Part shown: in pieces, positions 1,922-9,140 of the stretch
How the letters are laid out: the number at the start of each line of letters is the position of its first letter
Position numbering within the stretch: the stretch's first letter is position 1
Assembly (NCBI GenBank): GCA_001179505.1
Contig: CDMY01000945.1
Coordinates: 1-9,140, forward strand
Direction of reading: 5' to 3'
DNA from: Vitrella brassicaformis CCMP3155
Taxonomy: Eukaryota; Protista; Chromerida
Length of the DNA: 9,140 nucleotides
Position numbers and translations under genes: made by a program
The notes under the pieces: generated by a model
Databases searched by the model: none
Seen by the model: only the letters and a program-made list of their open reading frames with translations
Told to the model about the DNA's origin: nothing

Positions 1922-2095
1922 CGCACCACACGTTCCAGTCATCAGTTTGCAAAGAGTCGTGCGCATCAAGGCGGCCCCCTGGGTGGTTTTGGGGGGTAAC
2001 GTGCGGACCTATGGTTGTGTGTGCATCATGACCGCGCTGCCGAGGGCTACACACACACAACAGATCAGCCCCAGACACCTCGACCGTGTCGAGAT

Positions 2096-2139
2096 TCGCG
2101 AACCCTGAACCCTATAAACCTCGCGAACCCTGAACCCTA
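2096..2139. repeat. Two copies of TCGCGAACCCTGAACCCTA; interstitial telomere-like heptamers (TT[T/C]AGGG-type on the - strand)
   Basis: Identical 19-mers at 2096-2114 and 2121-2139. Each holds AACCCTG AACCCTA, and a degenerate TAAACCT lies between them. The resemblance to the apicomplexan-type TT(T/C)AGGG telomere repeat is from prior knowledge. Confidence 0.7.
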
Positions 2140-2380
2140 GAGGCATGATGTTGATACCAGCATGACCGCGTCTCCGTCCTGAGCAACATGGGCGTCACAG
2201 ATTGTCCGTACGAGGTCAAGATCACGAGATCTGATCTCCCCAACAAGACATTAGGGCGGCCATTGCGCAGCAACCACGGCGAATGAGCTCTCGATGAGTC
2301 AGCCATTTTGACCGCCCTGACGCACTGACTCATTCATCTGCCCCTCTCGACCCCGCCCTCCCTCTCCCTCCCCCTGCAGC

Positions 2381-2597
2381 GACCCACCTGAGGTCTGCCA
2401 ATCACTTCCCCCTCTGCCGCACATCGACCGCCGGCGCCATCGCGTCCTCTCCCGCAGCGCCGCATACAAGACGTCCGGCTGGCTGACCACCCTCCCATCG
2501 ACAGACAACAACACTGGTCTTGATGCTGCGGAGTTTCGAGATGCCCTCAACATGCGATACGGCCGTCACCCCCCTGGCCTCGCTGCACGCTGCGAGC
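2381..2597 (+). mobile_element. Fragment of the post-RT C-terminal region of a CRE-like (restriction-like endonuclease) non-LTR retrotransposon, cut by the gap
   Basis: An open frame not fully shown in the ORF track reads DPPEVCQSLPPLPHIDRRRHRVLSRSAAYKTSGWLTTLPSTDNNTGLDAAEFRDALNMRYGRHPPGLAARCE(gap). SGWLTxLP...EFRDALxxRYG...C is the pattern I recall just before the CCHC zinc knuckle of CRE-type elements. No RT motifs are seen upstream. Confidence 0.65.
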
Positions 2598-2897
2598 NNN
2601 NNNNNNNNNNNNNNNNNNNNNNNNNNNNNNNNNNNNNNNNNNNNNNNNNNNNNNNNNNNNNNNNNNNNNNNNNNNNNNNNNNNNNNNNNNNNNNNNNNNN
2701 NNNNNNNNNNNNNNNNNNNNNNNNNNNNNNNNNNNNNNNNNNNNNNNNNNNNNNNNNNNNNNNNNNNNNNNNNNNNNNNNNNNNNNNNNNNNNNNNNNNN
2801 NNNNNNNNNNNNNNNNNNNNNNNNNNNNNNNNNNNNNNNNNNNNNNNNNNNNNNNNNNNNNNNNNNNNNNNNNNNNNNNNNNNNNNNNNNNNNNNNN
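2598..2897. other. Assembly gap (300 N)
   Basis: Run of N. ORFs that cross it are artefacts. Confidence 1.
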
Positions 2898-3191
2898 GCA
2901 CACTTTTCATTGTCAACTCTTCCCCCATCCCCTCACTCAGGTTGATTGTTGGTCGTTTTCTCGGCGAATTGCAGATGCCGCCGGCCTCTCTGTAGAGCAT
3001 GACTGAGGCCACCGAACGCACTATCATCTGAGGTACACACATGAGGGCACACAGGGCATCCACATCTATATATGTACAGCCAAATATGGATATGTATACA
3101 TACATACATACTGTGTTTGCTCTGTGCTGCTGTGTGGTGTGCTGCGGTGTGCAGGTGTGCAGGTGTGTGGTGTGTAGTTCTGTCGTGGTGG
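2898..3191 (+). repeat. Left inverted repeat (294 bp visible)
   Basis: Begins GCACACTTTTCATTGTCAAC and ends ...GTTCTGTCGTGGTGG. It differs from the right copy by 3 substitutions and an extra GTGTGCAG (8 bp) near 3155-3162. Confidence 0.95.
2941..3032 (+). other. Putative non-coding 5'-UTR exon inside the left repeat (mirror copy 9097-9006 on the - strand)
   Basis: A pyrimidine tract and CAG acceptor end at 2940. A GAG|GTACAC donor starts at 3033, followed by an intron-like CA/GT-rich stretch ending in GTGTGCAG (3154 or 3162). All three frames of the exon contain stops. The next long-ORF ATG is at 3253 (left) and 8852 (right). Confidence 0.55.
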
Positions 3192-3252: not shown

Positions 3253-4554
3253 ATGGAGGCCCAGCAATACCTGCACCGCCCCAGAGCTGACGGCACGAGG
3301 GACGTGACGGTTCTGAAGAAGAATGGAGACATGGTGACAGTCAGCATCCCGCGAGCCCTGTCTGACGACATGAAGAAACAGCTGACGGGCCGAGCGGCTG
3401 ACTCCACACTGGACAACATGCTGCTGTCTGGGTGGGTTGGTATCCGGCGATATGGCCATGGGCTGGGAGATTGGCTGAAGCGGCATCGAGCCGTCTATCT
3501 GCGGTTTGTTCCCACCATGGACGAATCTGCCAGATCCACTCTTCCACGCAGCCTCTCAACTGATGAGCTCCAGCAGCTTGTCGACGAGGCCCACCGGTGT
3601 GTGCCTGACTTGGGTATCGATCCCGTCGCCAGCCACCCCTCCGCCCTGCGTCTTGATAGAGGAGTGATCGAGCATGAGGTCCTGATGGCACTGGAGAGCG
3701 ATGAGCCCTTCCCACTGCTGCGGTCGCTGGGGCTGGAGGACCTCCTCTTGTCCAACCACGCCCAGTACAGCTCGAAGATCCCAGCCATCCCACCAGCACC
3801 ATCGCGGCGCAGGAGACGTGACAGTGGTGACGACGATGACAGCCACCGCCCGTCGAGGAGACGTGCTTCTCGTCTGCCGGCCGTCGCCGCACACCCATCT
3901 CGCCAGCCCAAGAGAAAGGCGAGGTCTCCTGCCCTCGATCCAGCTTTCCCGCAGATTTCCAGTCCACTGAGGAAAGTGCCGTCTCCTGAGCGGGACAAGG
4001 GGAGGGACGTCGCTGCGGCTGCTGCTGCTGCCCGAGGCCGATCTCCGCCCCTATCGCCTCAGCCAATGGACGAAGATCCTCCCCCACCGGCAGCCGCTGC
4101 TGCTGCTGCTGCCTCTGTCGTCATGCCCAAGGCTGCCCCGGCCCGTCCGTCAGCCGCGGCGCCGGCTGCCAGACGCCTCCCTTCCCCTCCTCCCTGGGCT
4201 GTCCATCCGCAGCCGGCCGCATTGGCGTCTCCTCTGCGTCGATCGAACCCCCCACCACCAGCAGCTGCATCTCCGGAGAGGTCCCGTTTCTCGCGTCCGC
4301 TGCAATCTCCTGCCTCTCCCCCACCACCACCACCACCGCTGCTGTCTCCCCCACCATCACCACCGCCAGCAGCAGCAGCAGCAGCAGCCCGCCAGCCCCG
4401 GCCTGCCGGCCCTTCTGTGCACTCGGTCGACCTATTCTACGACTCTGACGAGGGCGAGGCGGAAGAGGACGAAAGCGACAGGGATGAAGAGTCACATGTT
4501 GGCGGAGATTATCCCGTGTGTGTTCGACCCTTCCGCCCAGCTGCCGTGGCTTGA
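3253..4554 (+). CDS. 433-aa ORF: a ~175-aa unrecognised N-terminal domain followed by Pro/Ala/Ser-rich and acidic low-complexity sequence; probably the N-terminal part of the transposase gene
   Basis: Long ORF starting 62 bp inside the left repeat boundary. It overlaps the transposase frame around 4430-4554. A 43-nt (4498-4540) or 25-nt (4516-4540) GT..AG intron would fuse the two frames. Confidence 0.6.
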   Translation: MEAQQYLHRPRADGTRDVTVLKKNGDMVTVSIPRALSDDMKKQLTGRAADSTLDNMLLSGWVGIRRYGHGLGDWLKRHRAVYLRFVPTMDESARSTLPRSLSTDELQQLVDEAHRCVPDLGIDPVASHPSALRLDRGVIEHEVLMALESDEPFPLLRSLGLEDLLLSNHAQYSSKIPAIPPAPSRRRRRDSGDDDDSHRPSRRRASRLPAVAAHPSRQPKRKARSPALDPAFPQISSPLRKVPSPERDKGRDVAAAAAAARGRSPPLSPQPMDEDPPPPAAAAAAAASVVMPKAAPARPSAAAPAARRLPSPPPWAVHPQPAALASPLRRSNPPPPAAASPERSRFSRPLQSPASPPPPPPPLLSPPPSPPPAAAAAAARQPRPAGPSVHSVDLFYDSDEGEAEEDESDRDEESHVGGDYPVCVRPFRPAAVA

Positions 4555-7187
4555 GAGGGACGGCGAGGGAGGCGGCGAGGGGGCTGCTGCCGCGCCCCCT
4601 GAGGGTGGATGGATGAGTGATCAGATATCCCTTGACAACTCAGTCGACGGGATCGTGTCTGCCCTGGTCGACTTCTTGTTCTGGATGCCGGCGGAGGGTT
4701 TCCAGGACTTTATGCGTCGACTGTGGACGGTGTATCAGGAGCGGCACGCCGGGCGGCTGGTGTCCACCTCGACACGGCTGAAGGCACTGGAGGCGGGCTT
4801 CAACAAGCTGGCCGTGCTTTACGCCGACCACACATGGCAGGTGCCATGGAGCGTCTGGAAGTCGGTGACTCTCGCGACCAAGAGCAGCCAGAAGAAGACA
4901 CAGGTCTTCCGCAACATCCTCACCGGCCGCTTCGATCATCAGCGAAGGCGGTGGTTTCGAGACTTCACGCGGCCCTCCATCGTGCCGAGCGAGAAGGTCG
5001 TGAGGGGGGAGATGGACAGCCTGTTGAAGATCGTGGTGAAGGATGAGCAGGCGGTCGGTGCTGCCGACATGGGCGACGATGAGGCTCACCGACAGCTCGG
5101 ACGTCTCCCTGACCCAAACACGCTGGAGTTCTATGTGCCGCCGAAGGAGAAGGGCAAGTCCTTCGGCAACACATGGGTCGATCCTGCCGACATGTTCTTC
5201 CGCTTGTTCACTGACCATCCAGCCATCCTTTCGGAGTGTCTCGGCATCACTCTGCCGAAGAGACCTCGCGGCAGCCGCGAGCCACCGACGATCGACTTGG
5301 ACGCGTGCTTCTCAGGCGACGGCAGCATCTTTGCGAGAAGCAGGCACAACGCACAGGTTTGCTCACTTTGTTTGTTGTTTCTGTGTGTTGTTTGTCTCTT
5401 CCACAGGCTGTGACACTCGCCATTCGCTTGCTGCCAAGTGAGGTCAGCCGTGAGAAGCCGGAGCCCCAGTTTTCCGCCAACTCGTTCGAGGCGGTCTTTC
5501 CCTGTCTGCTGGTTTACGGCAGCGAGAAGTGGGAGTCTCTGCTGCCCTACAAGGCGCGGCTCAACAGTGCACTCAGGAGGATGAAGGAGGGAGTGGAGCT
5601 GACCATCAACGGGCGCACCTATCGTCTCAGATTTCATTTCTGCGCAACGTCTGACCAGGTAAGACAGTCACCCATTCCACTCACTGTGAGTCACTGTGTA
5701 CGTGTGTCTGTGTGCTGTGTGTAGTGTGTGCAGAAGTTTCACTCGATCCAGATGGGCCACGTCGGGCCGTCTGGCAACTTCGGTTGCCAGTTTTGCTTCA
5801 CTCACAAGGACCACTACAACAGTGAGCTGCTCGCCCTCCATTACCTCGGCTCTCCCATCGACCCAATCGCGGCCGTCGCACGCCCTCCCACCCGCACAGT
5901 CGCGGCAATGAAGCAACGGGCCGCCATCAGCGAGTCCAACAACGGTTGCTGGTTTTGTTTTCATGTCTGGACTCTCAGAGTGGTTGGACGAGCGGGGGAT
6001 CCAAGTGCGATTTCTACCTGTCATCTGCAAGACGCACCCACGTCAGACACACCACAAAAAGGAAGCCGCACGCACCCGTCATTTCTCATTCTCGGTCTGC
6101 GTGATTGATGCAGCGGCCACCGTCAACCCAGCTGGAGCAACGGCCAACCCTCGGGCTGACCTGCTCGAGTTCGTGGATGATGATCTCTTCGACGAGATGG
6201 ACCCGGCCGCCATGGCACGCGAGGCGGCCGAGAACAAGGCCATTCTGGGCGAGACGACCCTGGTGCTGGAGCTTTTGAACGGGCGCCTGCATGCCCGCGA
6301 CATCAAGAGGTGGGTGGACGACATGGTGTCGTTCATGGAGCTCTTCGAGCAGTTGGACGAGTCGAGGACCAGCAGCTTCCATGTGCTTCTCGAGAGCTAC
6401 GCTTGGGTGTGGCCCTTCCTTCTGCGGTCTTGCAAGTCGACGGAGAAGCAGCAGGCGCTGTTCCGGACGGCTATCTGGCAGATCAGGATGGCAGCTGTCG
6501 AGAGGTGAGGCGTCAGCAGCTCCATTCAATCAACCCATGTATGTGTGCTGCTTGTGTGTTTGTCAGCCTCGGTTGGGGCGACATCTTTAGCCAGCCGTCC
6601 TTCCACCTCCTCATGTGCCACTCCTTGTATGGTGCCGTCATCACAGCCGCAAGCCCATCGGTGTGTCGAGCAACATGAACGCCCATGAGTCCATGAACCA
6701 CCAGCTGCACGAGATATTCGAGCGACAGACGATGAAGGGCGGCGGAACAAGTGACAAGACCACCCTTCCCGTCGCCGCCATCTCTCAGTCCGCCTCTCGT
6801 CTGCTGCTCGCCTCCAAGGGGCGAATCGAGCAGTGGGTGTTTTGCAACGCGGCCAGCAAGAAGAGCACAAGGATGCTGCCCCAAGACGAGTACGACAAGC
6901 CGCTCCCGCGCCTCAGGAGGTTCGTCATCGAGAGGCGGAGCCGCAACCCACAAGGCGTGCATCAGGGCGGCATGACGGAGCCCACTGCTGAGTGGTGGGC
7001 CGAGCGGCTCGACACCGCCCGACAGTTGTATGAGAGGGGTGACTTTTCTCGGTCGCGCCAGGAACTCGAGCAACGGGCAGCAGACCAGGCCGCTGCCAAG
7101 GCCAAGGCCAAGGCAATGGCTAAGATCAAGACCAAGGCCAAGGCAAAGGCTAAGGTCAAGGGCGCCAAGGGTGCCACGGATCGATGA
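4484..7187 (+). CDS. RAG1/Transib-type DDE transposase core; exons ~4484/4541-5356, 5407-5658, 5734-6004, 6114-6504, 6567-7187, with a probable 1-bp frameshift at ~6622-6646
   Basis: Introns 5357-5406, 5659-5733, 6005-6113 and 6505-6566 are GT..AG and phase-consistent. Motifs: FSGDG (D 5318-5320); ATSD|QKFHSIQMGHVGPSGNFGCQFC (D 5653-5655; K+2, G+9, C+19, C+22, the same offsets as RAG1 [23 protein letters not shown]); FHLLMCH (HxxxxH, 6604-6621); KPIGVSSNMNAHESMNH (E 6687-6689; compare Transib PIGxLSEEAQEARNK). In this model D-D is 95 aa and D-E about 263 aa. The C-terminus is an Ala-Lys repeat. Confidence 0.8.
7095..7169 (+). repeat. GCCAAG-type coding repeat giving the basic tail AKAKAKAMAKIKTKAKAKAKVKGAK
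   Basis: Hexamer periodicity is visible in the DNA and in the translation of ORF 6615-7187. Confidence 0.85.
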
Positions 7188-7231
7188 GTGAGGAGTTCGA
7201 CAGGCCTTGTTTGAGTGTCATGTGTGTTGGC

Positions 7232-7549
7232 GAGTGAGTGAGTGAGTCAGTGGCTGATTGAGCCGTTGAGCGAATGAATTGACTCACACCCATTGTGATT
7301 GACCTTGTGCACATGTCTGTACAGCGATGGATGCAATCAACACGTCATGCAATCAACACGTCATGAAATCAACGCGTCCCACCCACCTACCATCAATCAT
7401 CCACATCTAGTGATAGACAGGCCATCTGAGTGTAATTTGTGTTTGTGATTGAGTGAGTGACCGAGTGAGTGGCTAATTGATCCGTTGAGCGGATGGATTG
7501 ACTCACACACATATCTGTACAGCGTCATGAATCCACACGTCATGAAATC
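7232..7549. repeat. Diverged direct duplication and 16-bp tandem repeat in the spacer between the two convergent genes
   Basis: 7249-7289 and 7468-7508 match at 37 of 41 positions, with further shared TCTGTACAGCG and CACGTCATGAAATC blocks. ATGCAATCAACACGTC occurs three times at 7331-7378 (third copy degenerate). Confidence 0.8.
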
Positions 7550-7618
7550 CATGCATGGATGGACACGTACGGACGTCCAATCAGTCGCCACCCATCCGCC
7601 CACCCACCCAACCAGGCC

Positions 7619-8852
7619 TCAACCATCCCCATCTATCATCTCTTGGTTCTGGTTCGCGGCTGCCAGCATCTCTTGCTCTCTAGGATCCACCTCTCCCTCC
7701 GGCATGTGCGCGCCCATGAAGGCGGGCACTTCCTCGTCAGCCTGAGGATCCTCTCCCTCCCCATCGGCCTCCTCATCCTCCTGACCCTCGTCTTGGTCCT
7801 CCATGGCATCAGCTGCCGCAGCCAGCGCGTCGACCTGCACATACTCGACATGATAGTGGAAGTTGAGCTCGACGATGGGTTGGGTGAGGCGCAGGGGCGA
7901 GACTTTGATGACCAAGGGCTTCTCAGGTGTGACAACCAGCCGCATCTGCACACACACATACAGACACAGACACAGACACAGACAGACACAGACACAAGGG
8001 TGATGGTCTGACAGTGGTGATGTGTGTGTGTGTGTGTCAGGATGGTGTGAATGACCGTCTGATCGCTGCCGTTCTTCAACCTAATCGTCCGGCCCTCGAG
8101 GCATCGCGTGCTGTTCAGTAGCCTACCGACGAGCCCGGCTACTTCCCCACCATCCCCGCCCGCCTCGCCCGCCCCGCCCTCTCCGTTGATGACGACGGCC
8201 GACCACACTGCAGTGGCGTCGACGATCGCATCATCACTGCCCAGCAGCGCCCGCCGCTCCTCGTCACGCTTGATCTTGTCCAGCCTGTCGCGGCTCCACA
8301 TGAGCGTCACGCTCATGGCGGGGCGGGCTGAGCCGCCTGGCCCTCGGCATTCGGCAGAGCCGAATGGCGTAAGAACCACCTGGCTAGGATCACGGCGTCA
8401 TGGGCGCTGGCGGACGGGGCGATGCGTCTGACCTTTCCCTCCATCACCACCCCATCGCCGTGCAGCTGAGAGGGCTGGACCGGGACGAGCTTCGACCCGC
8501 GTGGGCAGGGACGGCCGAACAATGCCCACATCTTCTTCTCCCCGTTGTTGAAGACGGAGAAGAGGGAGGACAGGTCCCTGTACAGCTGTGGGTCGCCCCC
8601 CTCTCTCGCTCGCTGGAGAGTGGCCGCCCATCCGCCGTCGAGCACCTGCCCGTCCTTGAGGAAGTCGAGGCTCCCGACTGACGAGTGCGGGTTGCTGGGG
8701 CGGCGGTGCTGCTTCTCGACCTTCGGGTAGAGGGAGGGGAACCGCCGCATGGCGGCAGACGTGCCGTTGCGCGTGAAGGAGGAGAGGGGTGGCTTGCCCT
8801 CCTTGGCGCGTTGCAGGTTGCGCCGTGGTGCGAGTGGAGGATCCTCGTTCAT
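7619..8852 (-). CDS. Unrecognised ~356-aa transposon accessory protein with an acidic C-terminal tail; exons 8852-8433, 8379-8056, 7945-7619
   Basis: The ATG lies 3 bp inside the right repeat boundary. Phase-0 GT..AG introns 8432-8380 (53 nt) and 8055-7946 (microsatellite-rich) give a stop-free product: MNEDPPLAPRRNLQ...MEGK|VVLTPFGS...GSDQT|MRLVVTPEKPLVIKVSPLRLTQPIVELNFHYHVEYVQVD...EDQDEGQEDEEADGEGEDPQADEE...IDGDG*. I recognise no domain. Confidence 0.65.
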
Positions 8853-8854
8853 CT

Positions 8855-9140
8855 CCACCACGACAGAACTACACACCACACACCTGCACACCGCAGCACA
8901 CCACACAGCAGCACAGAGCAAACACAGCATGTATGTATGTATACATATCCATATTTGGCTGTACATATATGGATGTGGATGCCCTGTGTGCCCTCATGTG
9001 TGTACCTCAGATGATAGTGCGTTCGGTGGCCTCAGTCATGCTCTACAGAGAGGCCGGCGGCATCCGCAATTCGCCGAGAAAACGACCAACAATCAACCTG
9101 AGTGAGGGGATGGGGGAAGAGTTGACAATGAAAAGTGTGC
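8855..9140 (-). repeat. Right inverted repeat (286 bp visible)
   Basis: Ends ...GTTGACAATGAAAAGTGTGC, the exact reverse complement of 2898 onward. Confidence 0.95.

Follow-up and report, generated by a model that had tools for sequence, protein, structure and literature searches.

A decaying two-gene transposon in the chromerid alga Vitrella brassicaformis, probably of a new and very divergent lineage of the CMCT clade

The DNA of interest is a 9,140-nt window comprising an entire contig, C945 (CDMY01000945.1), of the 72.7-Mb, 1,064-contig assembly of the chromerid alga Vitrella brassicaformis. The contig carries most of a two-gene cut-and-paste DNA transposon: a transposase gene on the plus strand and a second gene convergent with it, lying between long inverted repeats. 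With a probability of about 0.72, we read this element as a decaying copy of a new, very divergent transposon lineage of the CMCT clade, belonging neither to Transib nor to RAG1L. This reading is built on catalytic and zinc-ligand residues and their spacing, the conservation of these residues in paralogs, the long inverted repeats, and the existence of other copies of the element, including deletion derivatives.

The transposase gene and its motifs are laid out as follows (window positions throughout).

3253–7187, plus strand: transposase gene of about 1,180 codons, delimited by open frames, GT-AG boundaries and phases, and exon-wise matches to paralogs
3253–4497, 4541–5356, 5407–5658, 5734–5944 (or longer), a stretch ending at 6504, and 6567–7187 (frameshifted), plus strand: exons of the transposase gene
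5318–5320, plus strand: predicted first catalytic Asp (CFSGDGS), in a motif kept in the copies on contigs C226, C753 and C381
5653–5655, plus strand: predicted second catalytic Asp (SDQ), 95 amino acids past the first
5659–5733, plus strand: phase-0 GT-AG intron between the second Asp and the CxxC, at the same position and phase in paralog P0001
5734–5796, plus strand: ZnC2-type CxxC region, with K+2 (5734), G+9 (5755), C+19 (5785) and C+22 (5794)
5945–6113, plus strand: ambiguous stretch, read as a 34-nt intron (5945–5978), a 169-nt intron (5945–6113), or read-through to a TGA at 6106
6505–6566, plus strand: GT-AG intron of 62 nt
6604–6621, plus strand: HLLMCH, ZnH2-type His pair, in frame 1 (H-x-L/I-E-C-H in paralogs)
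6622–6686, plus strand: frameshift from frame 1 to frame 3, most likely at about 6645–6653; paralogs are continuous here
6687–6698, plus strand: ExxN, with the predicted catalytic Glu (6687) and an Asn (6696), in frame 3; both are invariant in the family alignment A3

Exons were searched one by one, and offsets across introns were counted arithmetically, exon by exon. Counted in this way, the Asp codons at 5318 (CFSGDGS) and 5653 (SDQ) are 95 residues apart, and the second Asp is followed by K+2, G+9, C+19 and C+22 (Gln being +1 and the next exon starting at +2), with the two Cys residues forming the motif CQFC. All four offsets are identical in P0001, a public protein model of the paralog on contig C226, which also has an intron at the equivalent place and phase (GDQ|KWIG). 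In the window this intron is 75 nt long (GTAAGA...GTGCAG) and separates the second Asp from the CxxC. The first-pass annotation of this DNA had described both the split and the four offsets, and the exon-by-exon count agrees with it. Further downstream lie HLLMCH, PIG (6654–6662) and the Glu of ExxN. Given the composition of the window protein, the Asp/Lys/Gly/Cys/Cys pattern has a chance expectation of 1.3e-5 per protein; for the ordered motif set including HxxxxH...ExxN, the expectation is approximately 4e-8.

The Lys and Gly presumably correspond to K710 and G717 of RAG1. For the other positions, the published numbering of mouse RAG1 (D600, D708 and E962, with zinc ligands C727/C730 and H937/H942; PMC4914335) yields the same +19, +22 and HxxxxH spacing, in agreement with the earlier claim that the two Cys offsets equal those of D708/C727/C730. 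However, a C(2)C plus H(3–4)H arrangement between the second Asp and the Glu is found in EnSpm/CACTA, Mirage, Chapaev, Transib, Plavaka, ESTA, Lanisha and RAG1 (PMC12730594). The motif pattern, being clade-wide, therefore places the protein in the CMCT clade and not specifically next to RAG1: the offsets that were first taken to track RAG1 stand, their specificity to RAG1 does not, and motif spacing by itself is not enough to place a transposase within Transib or RAG1.

Searching the genome in six frames revealed diverged copies of the gene on contigs C226, C33, C753, C80, C381, C909, C1026 and others (E values from 4e-16 to about 1e-3 overall, and from 4e-16 to 2e-4 on the seven contigs named), most of them truncated or broken. 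These paralogs keep the first-Asp motif, the second Asp with its K/G/CxxC series, the His pair, and the Glu motif in the form E-S/A-x-N, and this conservation holds among paralogs that are 25–45% identical. An exhaustive phmmer search with P0001 against 1.84 billion representative proteins gave three matches, all from Vitrella, and word searches with the P0001 open frame, the partner gene and the C-terminus of public model P0003 returned nothing beyond each query's own record. As judged from these searches, the Vitrella lineage appears to be without sequence-detectable relatives outside Vitrella.

Under the CMCT reading, the plus-strand gene would encode a DDE transposase of that clade with a ribonuclease H (RNase H)-type fold, on which two Asp residues and one Glu would serve as ligands of the catalytic metals. 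One zinc would be coordinated jointly by the CxxC, which lies 19–22 residues past the second Asp, and the HxxxxH, about 23 residues ahead of the Glu; as in RAG1, this zinc would brace the large insertion that separates the second Asp from the Glu. We infer the RNase H fold and the zinc site of the transposase, together with its zinc binding and cutting chemistry.

Structure-level comparisons bear on the predicted core. Residues 300–702 of P0001, which align to window exons 2–4 at 25–34% identity (tblastn E value 5e-35), were used to query the ESM Atlas. The nearest clusters correspond to the RAG1 pre-RNase H, RNase H and ZnC2 regions (score 0.97, with 196 of 256 features shared), and seven of the ten best family-bearing matches share a family or clan with the top one. 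A score of 0.97 arises for about 1 in 100 shuffled proteins. No CACTA or Plavaka clusters were among the Atlas matches of P0001 300–702, the other neighbours being unnamed animal and fungal clusters. The low-confidence Atlas model of P0001 (predicted local distance difference test score, pLDDT, 0.49) gives template modelling scores of 0.52–0.62 against RAG1 models. The Atlas comparison of this paralog is the only positive link to RAG1; through it, a RAG1-type core in the transposase is indirectly supported.

The window copy itself shows several signs of decay. Firstly, the His pair HLLMCH lies in frame 1, while KPIG...HESMN lies in frame 3, with 68 nt from the second His to the Glu. Bridging the two frames needs the removal of a remainder of 2 (mod 3) within these 68 nt, so that no plausible intron is available; a 22-nt GT...AG mini-intron was considered as a bridge and rejected, being too short and giving the wrong resulting frame. 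In the copies on C753, C80, C909 and C381, a single frame runs without a break through the His pair, P-x-G and E-S/A-x-N, and the window therefore has either a frameshift or an assembly error at about 6645–6653. The first-pass annotation had read HLLMCH as an HxxxxH pair followed by ExxN, with PIG before the Glu; these motifs and the HxxxxH spacing are confirmed, the difference in frame between the His pair and the Glu being a correction.

Secondly, the stretch at 5945–6113 can be read in several ways. Both the 34-nt and the 169-nt GT-AG introns preserve the frame; frame 1 is open up to the TGA at 6106, aligns weakly with paralogs, and ends in a degenerate P-P-D-I-L-H (a D-x-x-H motif). Depending on the reading, the second Asp and the Glu are separated by about 242 amino acids (169-nt intron), 287 (34-nt intron) or 298 (read-through); the value of about 263 given previously was not reproduced. 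Thirdly, the partner gene is out of frame at 8322–8361 relative to the continuous open frames of its paralogs, and its public model, P0004, spans the break by means of an intron, at the cost of conserved residues. Given the transposase frameshift between the His pair and the Glu, the doubtful stretch at 5945–6113 and the frameshifted partner gene, the window copy is probably dead, as far as its reading frames indicate.

The ends of the element were delimited as follows.

1959–1961, unstranded: candidate 3-bp target-site duplication GTG, with one copy of the triplet at an empty site on contig C273 (L054 2784–2786); the triplet is common to both flanks
1964–3191, unstranded: left long inverted-repeat arm, about 0.9–1.0 kb of real sequence, containing an assembly gap at 2598–2897
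8855–9140, unstranded: inner part of the right inverted-repeat arm, ended by the contig edge

The arm segments at 2898–3191 and 8855–9140 are 99–100% complementary, and other copies show that the left arm extends outward past the assembly gap to position 1964. Window positions 1964–2415 are present at both ends of a copy on contig C1000 (L055 807–3994), a 3.2-kb internally deleted derivative whose arms span some 890 nt, compared with about 1.0 kb for the arm in the window. The left terminus in the window is CATCAAGGCGG, with an extra CG outside it at 1962–1963; CATCAAGGCGG begins four of five ends, and CG precedes three. Since the terminus is CATCAAGG, the opposite end finishes in TG, and the position of the terminal heptamer reads CATCAAG. 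Termini of the CA...TG type are those of most CMCT members, which generate duplications of 2–5 bp (PMC12730594).

The size of the target-site duplication comes from one insertion. On C273, the left-flank sequence of the C1000 copy adjoins that of the window (its final 56 nt), the two overlapping by the triplet CAC/GTG. No 5-mer duplication was found when the flanks were compared with the C273 empty site; GTG/CAC alone is in common. The outer left 450 nt of the C1000 copy is 98.7% identical to the window but 85–87% identical to the copy's own right arm; hence, the C1000 left junction probably belongs to a window-type element, and the mismatch between the C1000 arms suggests recombination, gene conversion or chimeric assembly. 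From the shared triplet we infer a target-site duplication of 3 bp, within the 2–5 bp range of the clade. Two other sources were considered and rejected: the C1000 copy alone, because its two flanks stem from different sites, and a second duplication from a junction on contig C932, which is truncated.

Several further features of these loci were observed. The C273 locus (L054 2740–2850), an apparently empty target site joining the C1000 flank to the window flank, is followed about 500 nt further on by a second, partial copy of the window flank. The right flank of the C1000 copy (L055 3995–4248) is part of a different repeat family, present at least 30 times in the genome, and on C932 this repeat abuts a truncated element end. 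Inside the window's left arm, at 2085–2140, lies a duplicated CGCGAACCCTGAACCCTA unit (short direct repeats).

The following points weigh against the CMCT reading. Pfam searches (including RAG1, Transposase_21 and Plavaka) at E values up to 1–10 gave no match for any exon or for the public paralog models P0001–P0003, and PDB sequence searches at E values up to 10, using three exons and the profiles A3, A5 and A6, did not find RAG1 or HzTransib. The Atlas signal for RAG1 comes from a language model and a low-confidence structure model, and from a paralog rather than from the window; the C-terminal half (residues 117–450 of P0003, a flawed public model) reaches scores of at most 0.88, with Plavaka at 0.86, and gives the ZnH2 half no support. 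AlphaFold, run on P0001 with an eleven-row family alignment, gave a model with a mean pLDDT of 46, and Foldseek and VIA-align searches with that model returned generic matches only, mostly helical bundles. The 3-bp duplication derives from a single insertion; its junctions are on two separate contigs, and the extra CG is unexplained. Finally, the frameshifts could be draft-assembly errors.

Additional profile searches were likewise blank. Pfam gave no match for the paralog open frames or for P0004, and the Pfam RAG1 and Transposase_21 (PF02992) profiles found nothing in the whole genome, where the controls were blank too, so that this negative carries no information. The first-pass annotation had named best profile matches to CACTA/Plavaka-type or unrelated proteins as the outcome that would speak against it; this outcome was looked for, and no such match was obtained.

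Downstream of the transposase gene lies the second gene of the element.

7622–8852, minus strand: second gene, convergent with the transposase (public model P0004, 366 amino acids), with a frameshift at 8322–8361 relative to paralogs

This gene encodes a protein of about 350 amino acids, whose conserved blocks include SVGSL-F and RLLGS-RC. Diverged homologues lie tail-to-tail with transposase remnants on contigs C909, C1026 and C608, which identifies the partner as a conserved second gene of the family. Indeed, the tail-to-tail arrangement is seen in at least four diverged copies: the window (7622–8852, minus strand), L043 (2094–3020), L046 (2037–2757) and L042 (3682–3891). Pfam and PDB searches with the partner and four paralogs gave no match and no RAG2 or kelch signal. 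An AlphaFold model of a partner paralog has a pLDDT of 40, with helices and strands mixed. The second intron of the partner gene (7946–8055) is a CA/GT microsatellite; in the C1026 copy (L043, about 2100–2300), a microsatellite at the equivalent place is read through in frame.

The remaining parts of the window can be described briefly. The copies on C753 and C584 conserve residues 1 to about 180 of the transposase (3253–3800), which have no Pfam match and may form a DNA-binding head; these residues are followed by a Pro/Ala-rich low-complexity stretch of about 230 residues. Between the stop codons of the two genes (7221–7560), there are two copies of a 73-nt unit and three of a 25-nt AATCAACACGTCATG-type unit. 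Both strands of the flank at 1–1960 carry short open frames that look spliced, and the flank also has tracts rich in GT/CA.

How the element should be classified within, or outside, the CMCT clade was considered against four other explanations. One is that it is a true Transib-superfamily or RAG1-like member lying beyond the reach of hidden Markov models (HMMs), its spacing a product of direct common descent with RAG1. The Atlas neighbours (RAG1 clusters together with unnamed ones from animals and fungi, and none of CACTA or Plavaka), the His spacing of HxxxxH and the convergence of the partner gene, as at RAG loci, all fit this idea. However, in the Atlas and the PDB no CMCT member other than RAG1 is well sampled, so that RAG1 attracts any CMCT protein; ESTA, a CMCT member outside Transib, also matches RAG1 in HHpred (PMC12730594). 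Transib elements have a 5-bp duplication and a 38-bp end with a CACAATG heptamer, the first three bases of which are invariant, and a nonamer (Kapitonov and Jurka 2005, PMC1131882); their single gene encodes about 700 amino acids, with 206–214 between the second Asp and the Glu (PMC1131882). In the Vitrella element the probable duplication is 3 bp rather than the Transib-defining 5 bp, CATCAAG is without the conserved C at the third position, there is no short heptamer-spacer-nonamer end, and the second Asp-to-Glu distance is 242–298 amino acids. Neither Pfam RAG1 nor the RAG1 and HzTransib chains were matched, and these Pfam and PDB sequence searches showed no significant similarity to Transib transposases or the RAG1 core. 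We regard membership of Transib or RAG1L as unlikely. The proposal of a RAG1-type DDE core that started this work draws indirect support from the Atlas neighbours of P0001. The spacing, being clade-wide, does not single out RAG1 or Transib, and the Transib hallmarks fail.

A divergent element of the EnSpm/CACTA or Chapaev type (CMC proper) would account for a 3-bp duplication, a CxxC near the second Asp and two genes per element, and CA...TG ends are consistent with it. The terminus, however, is CAT rather than CAC(TA), neither Transposase_21 (PF02992) nor Plavaka was matched at E values up to 10, and the Atlas neighbours are RAG1 clusters, with Plavaka appearing only at 0.86 and for the C-terminal half. 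Such an assignment is in our judgement quite improbable.

The tail-to-tail partner raises a more far-reaching idea: that the RAG transposon has an ancient two-gene relative in the Vitrella family, whose RAG1-type transposase would depend on an obligate partner, a functional analogue or a very distant homologue of RAG2. If true, a RAG architecture of two subunits would be older than animals and would occur in an alveolate. The adjacent RAG2-like kelch-propeller partner that characterizes RAG1L/ProtoRAG was not recognized by sequence, the partner model being too poor to judge the fold, and we consider the idea very unlikely. Least probable of all is a coincidental motif match in an unrelated DDE enzyme (for example a MULE-like one, which also has an ESxN Glu motif) or in no transposase at all: although no profile matches any family and the fold is predicted only, the ordered motifs have a joint chance expectation of about 4e-8, the motifs are kept in paralogs 25–45% identical, an Atlas score of 0.97 occurs for about 1 in 100 shuffled proteins, and the gene sits between 1-kb inverted repeats in a family with deletion derivatives.

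The preferred reading, a new and very divergent CMCT lineage, has consequences beyond this contig. Most known relatives of RAG1 come from animals, and some from a few fungi. The known diversity and host range of the CACTA/Transib/RAG1 group would both be widened by a chromerid-algal lineage that has the exact catalytic and zinc-ligand spacing of RAG1. Such a lineage would be distinctive, with ends of another kind, a probable target-site duplication of 3 bp and a conserved partner gene of its own, and it could serve as a distant outgroup for ancestral features of RAG1, including the zinc brace, the long insertion and the dependence on a partner. The direct biological impact is small, as the window copy is broken and copy number is low.

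Compared with known systems, the Vitrella element shares a different set of features with each. With Transib it has in common the catalytic motif set and a long second Asp-to-Glu distance; it differs in its probable 3-bp duplication, CATCAAG terminus, 1-kb arms, two genes and distance of 242–298 amino acids. With ProtoRAG and RAG1L-RAG2L elements it shares two convergent genes inside inverted repeats, one of them a predicted RAG1-type transposase, whereas its partner has no detectable RAG2 or kelch similarity, and its ends and duplication are different. RAG1 itself is a host recombinase, while the Vitrella gene belongs to a transposon in an alga. The Vitrella protein has no HMM match to Pfam RAG1 or to RAG1 chains and no RING or N-terminal RAG1 domain, and its first and second Asp are 95 amino acids apart, against 108 in RAG1. 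Like the RAG1 core, it has C+19/C+22, HxxxxH, and ExxN about 20–25 residues past the His pair, as well as the Atlas neighbours of its paralog; from the second Asp to the Glu, RAG1 has 254 amino acids and the Vitrella protein 242–298.

The element can also be compared with the CMCT clade as a whole, from which it departs in several respects. Its protein has no sequence similarity to any named lineage, its inverted repeats are about 1 kb long, its transposase of about 1,180 amino acids has a long, low-complexity N-terminal half, and its convergent second gene is without a known domain. Shared with the clade are (i) the DDE triad, (ii) the C(2)C plus H(3–4)H zinc motifs, here CQFC at +19/+22 and HLLMCH before ExxN (with the His pair and the Glu out of frame with one another in the window), (iii) a long insertion between the second Asp and the Glu, (iv) CA...TG ends, and (v) a probable target-site duplication within the 2–5 bp range.

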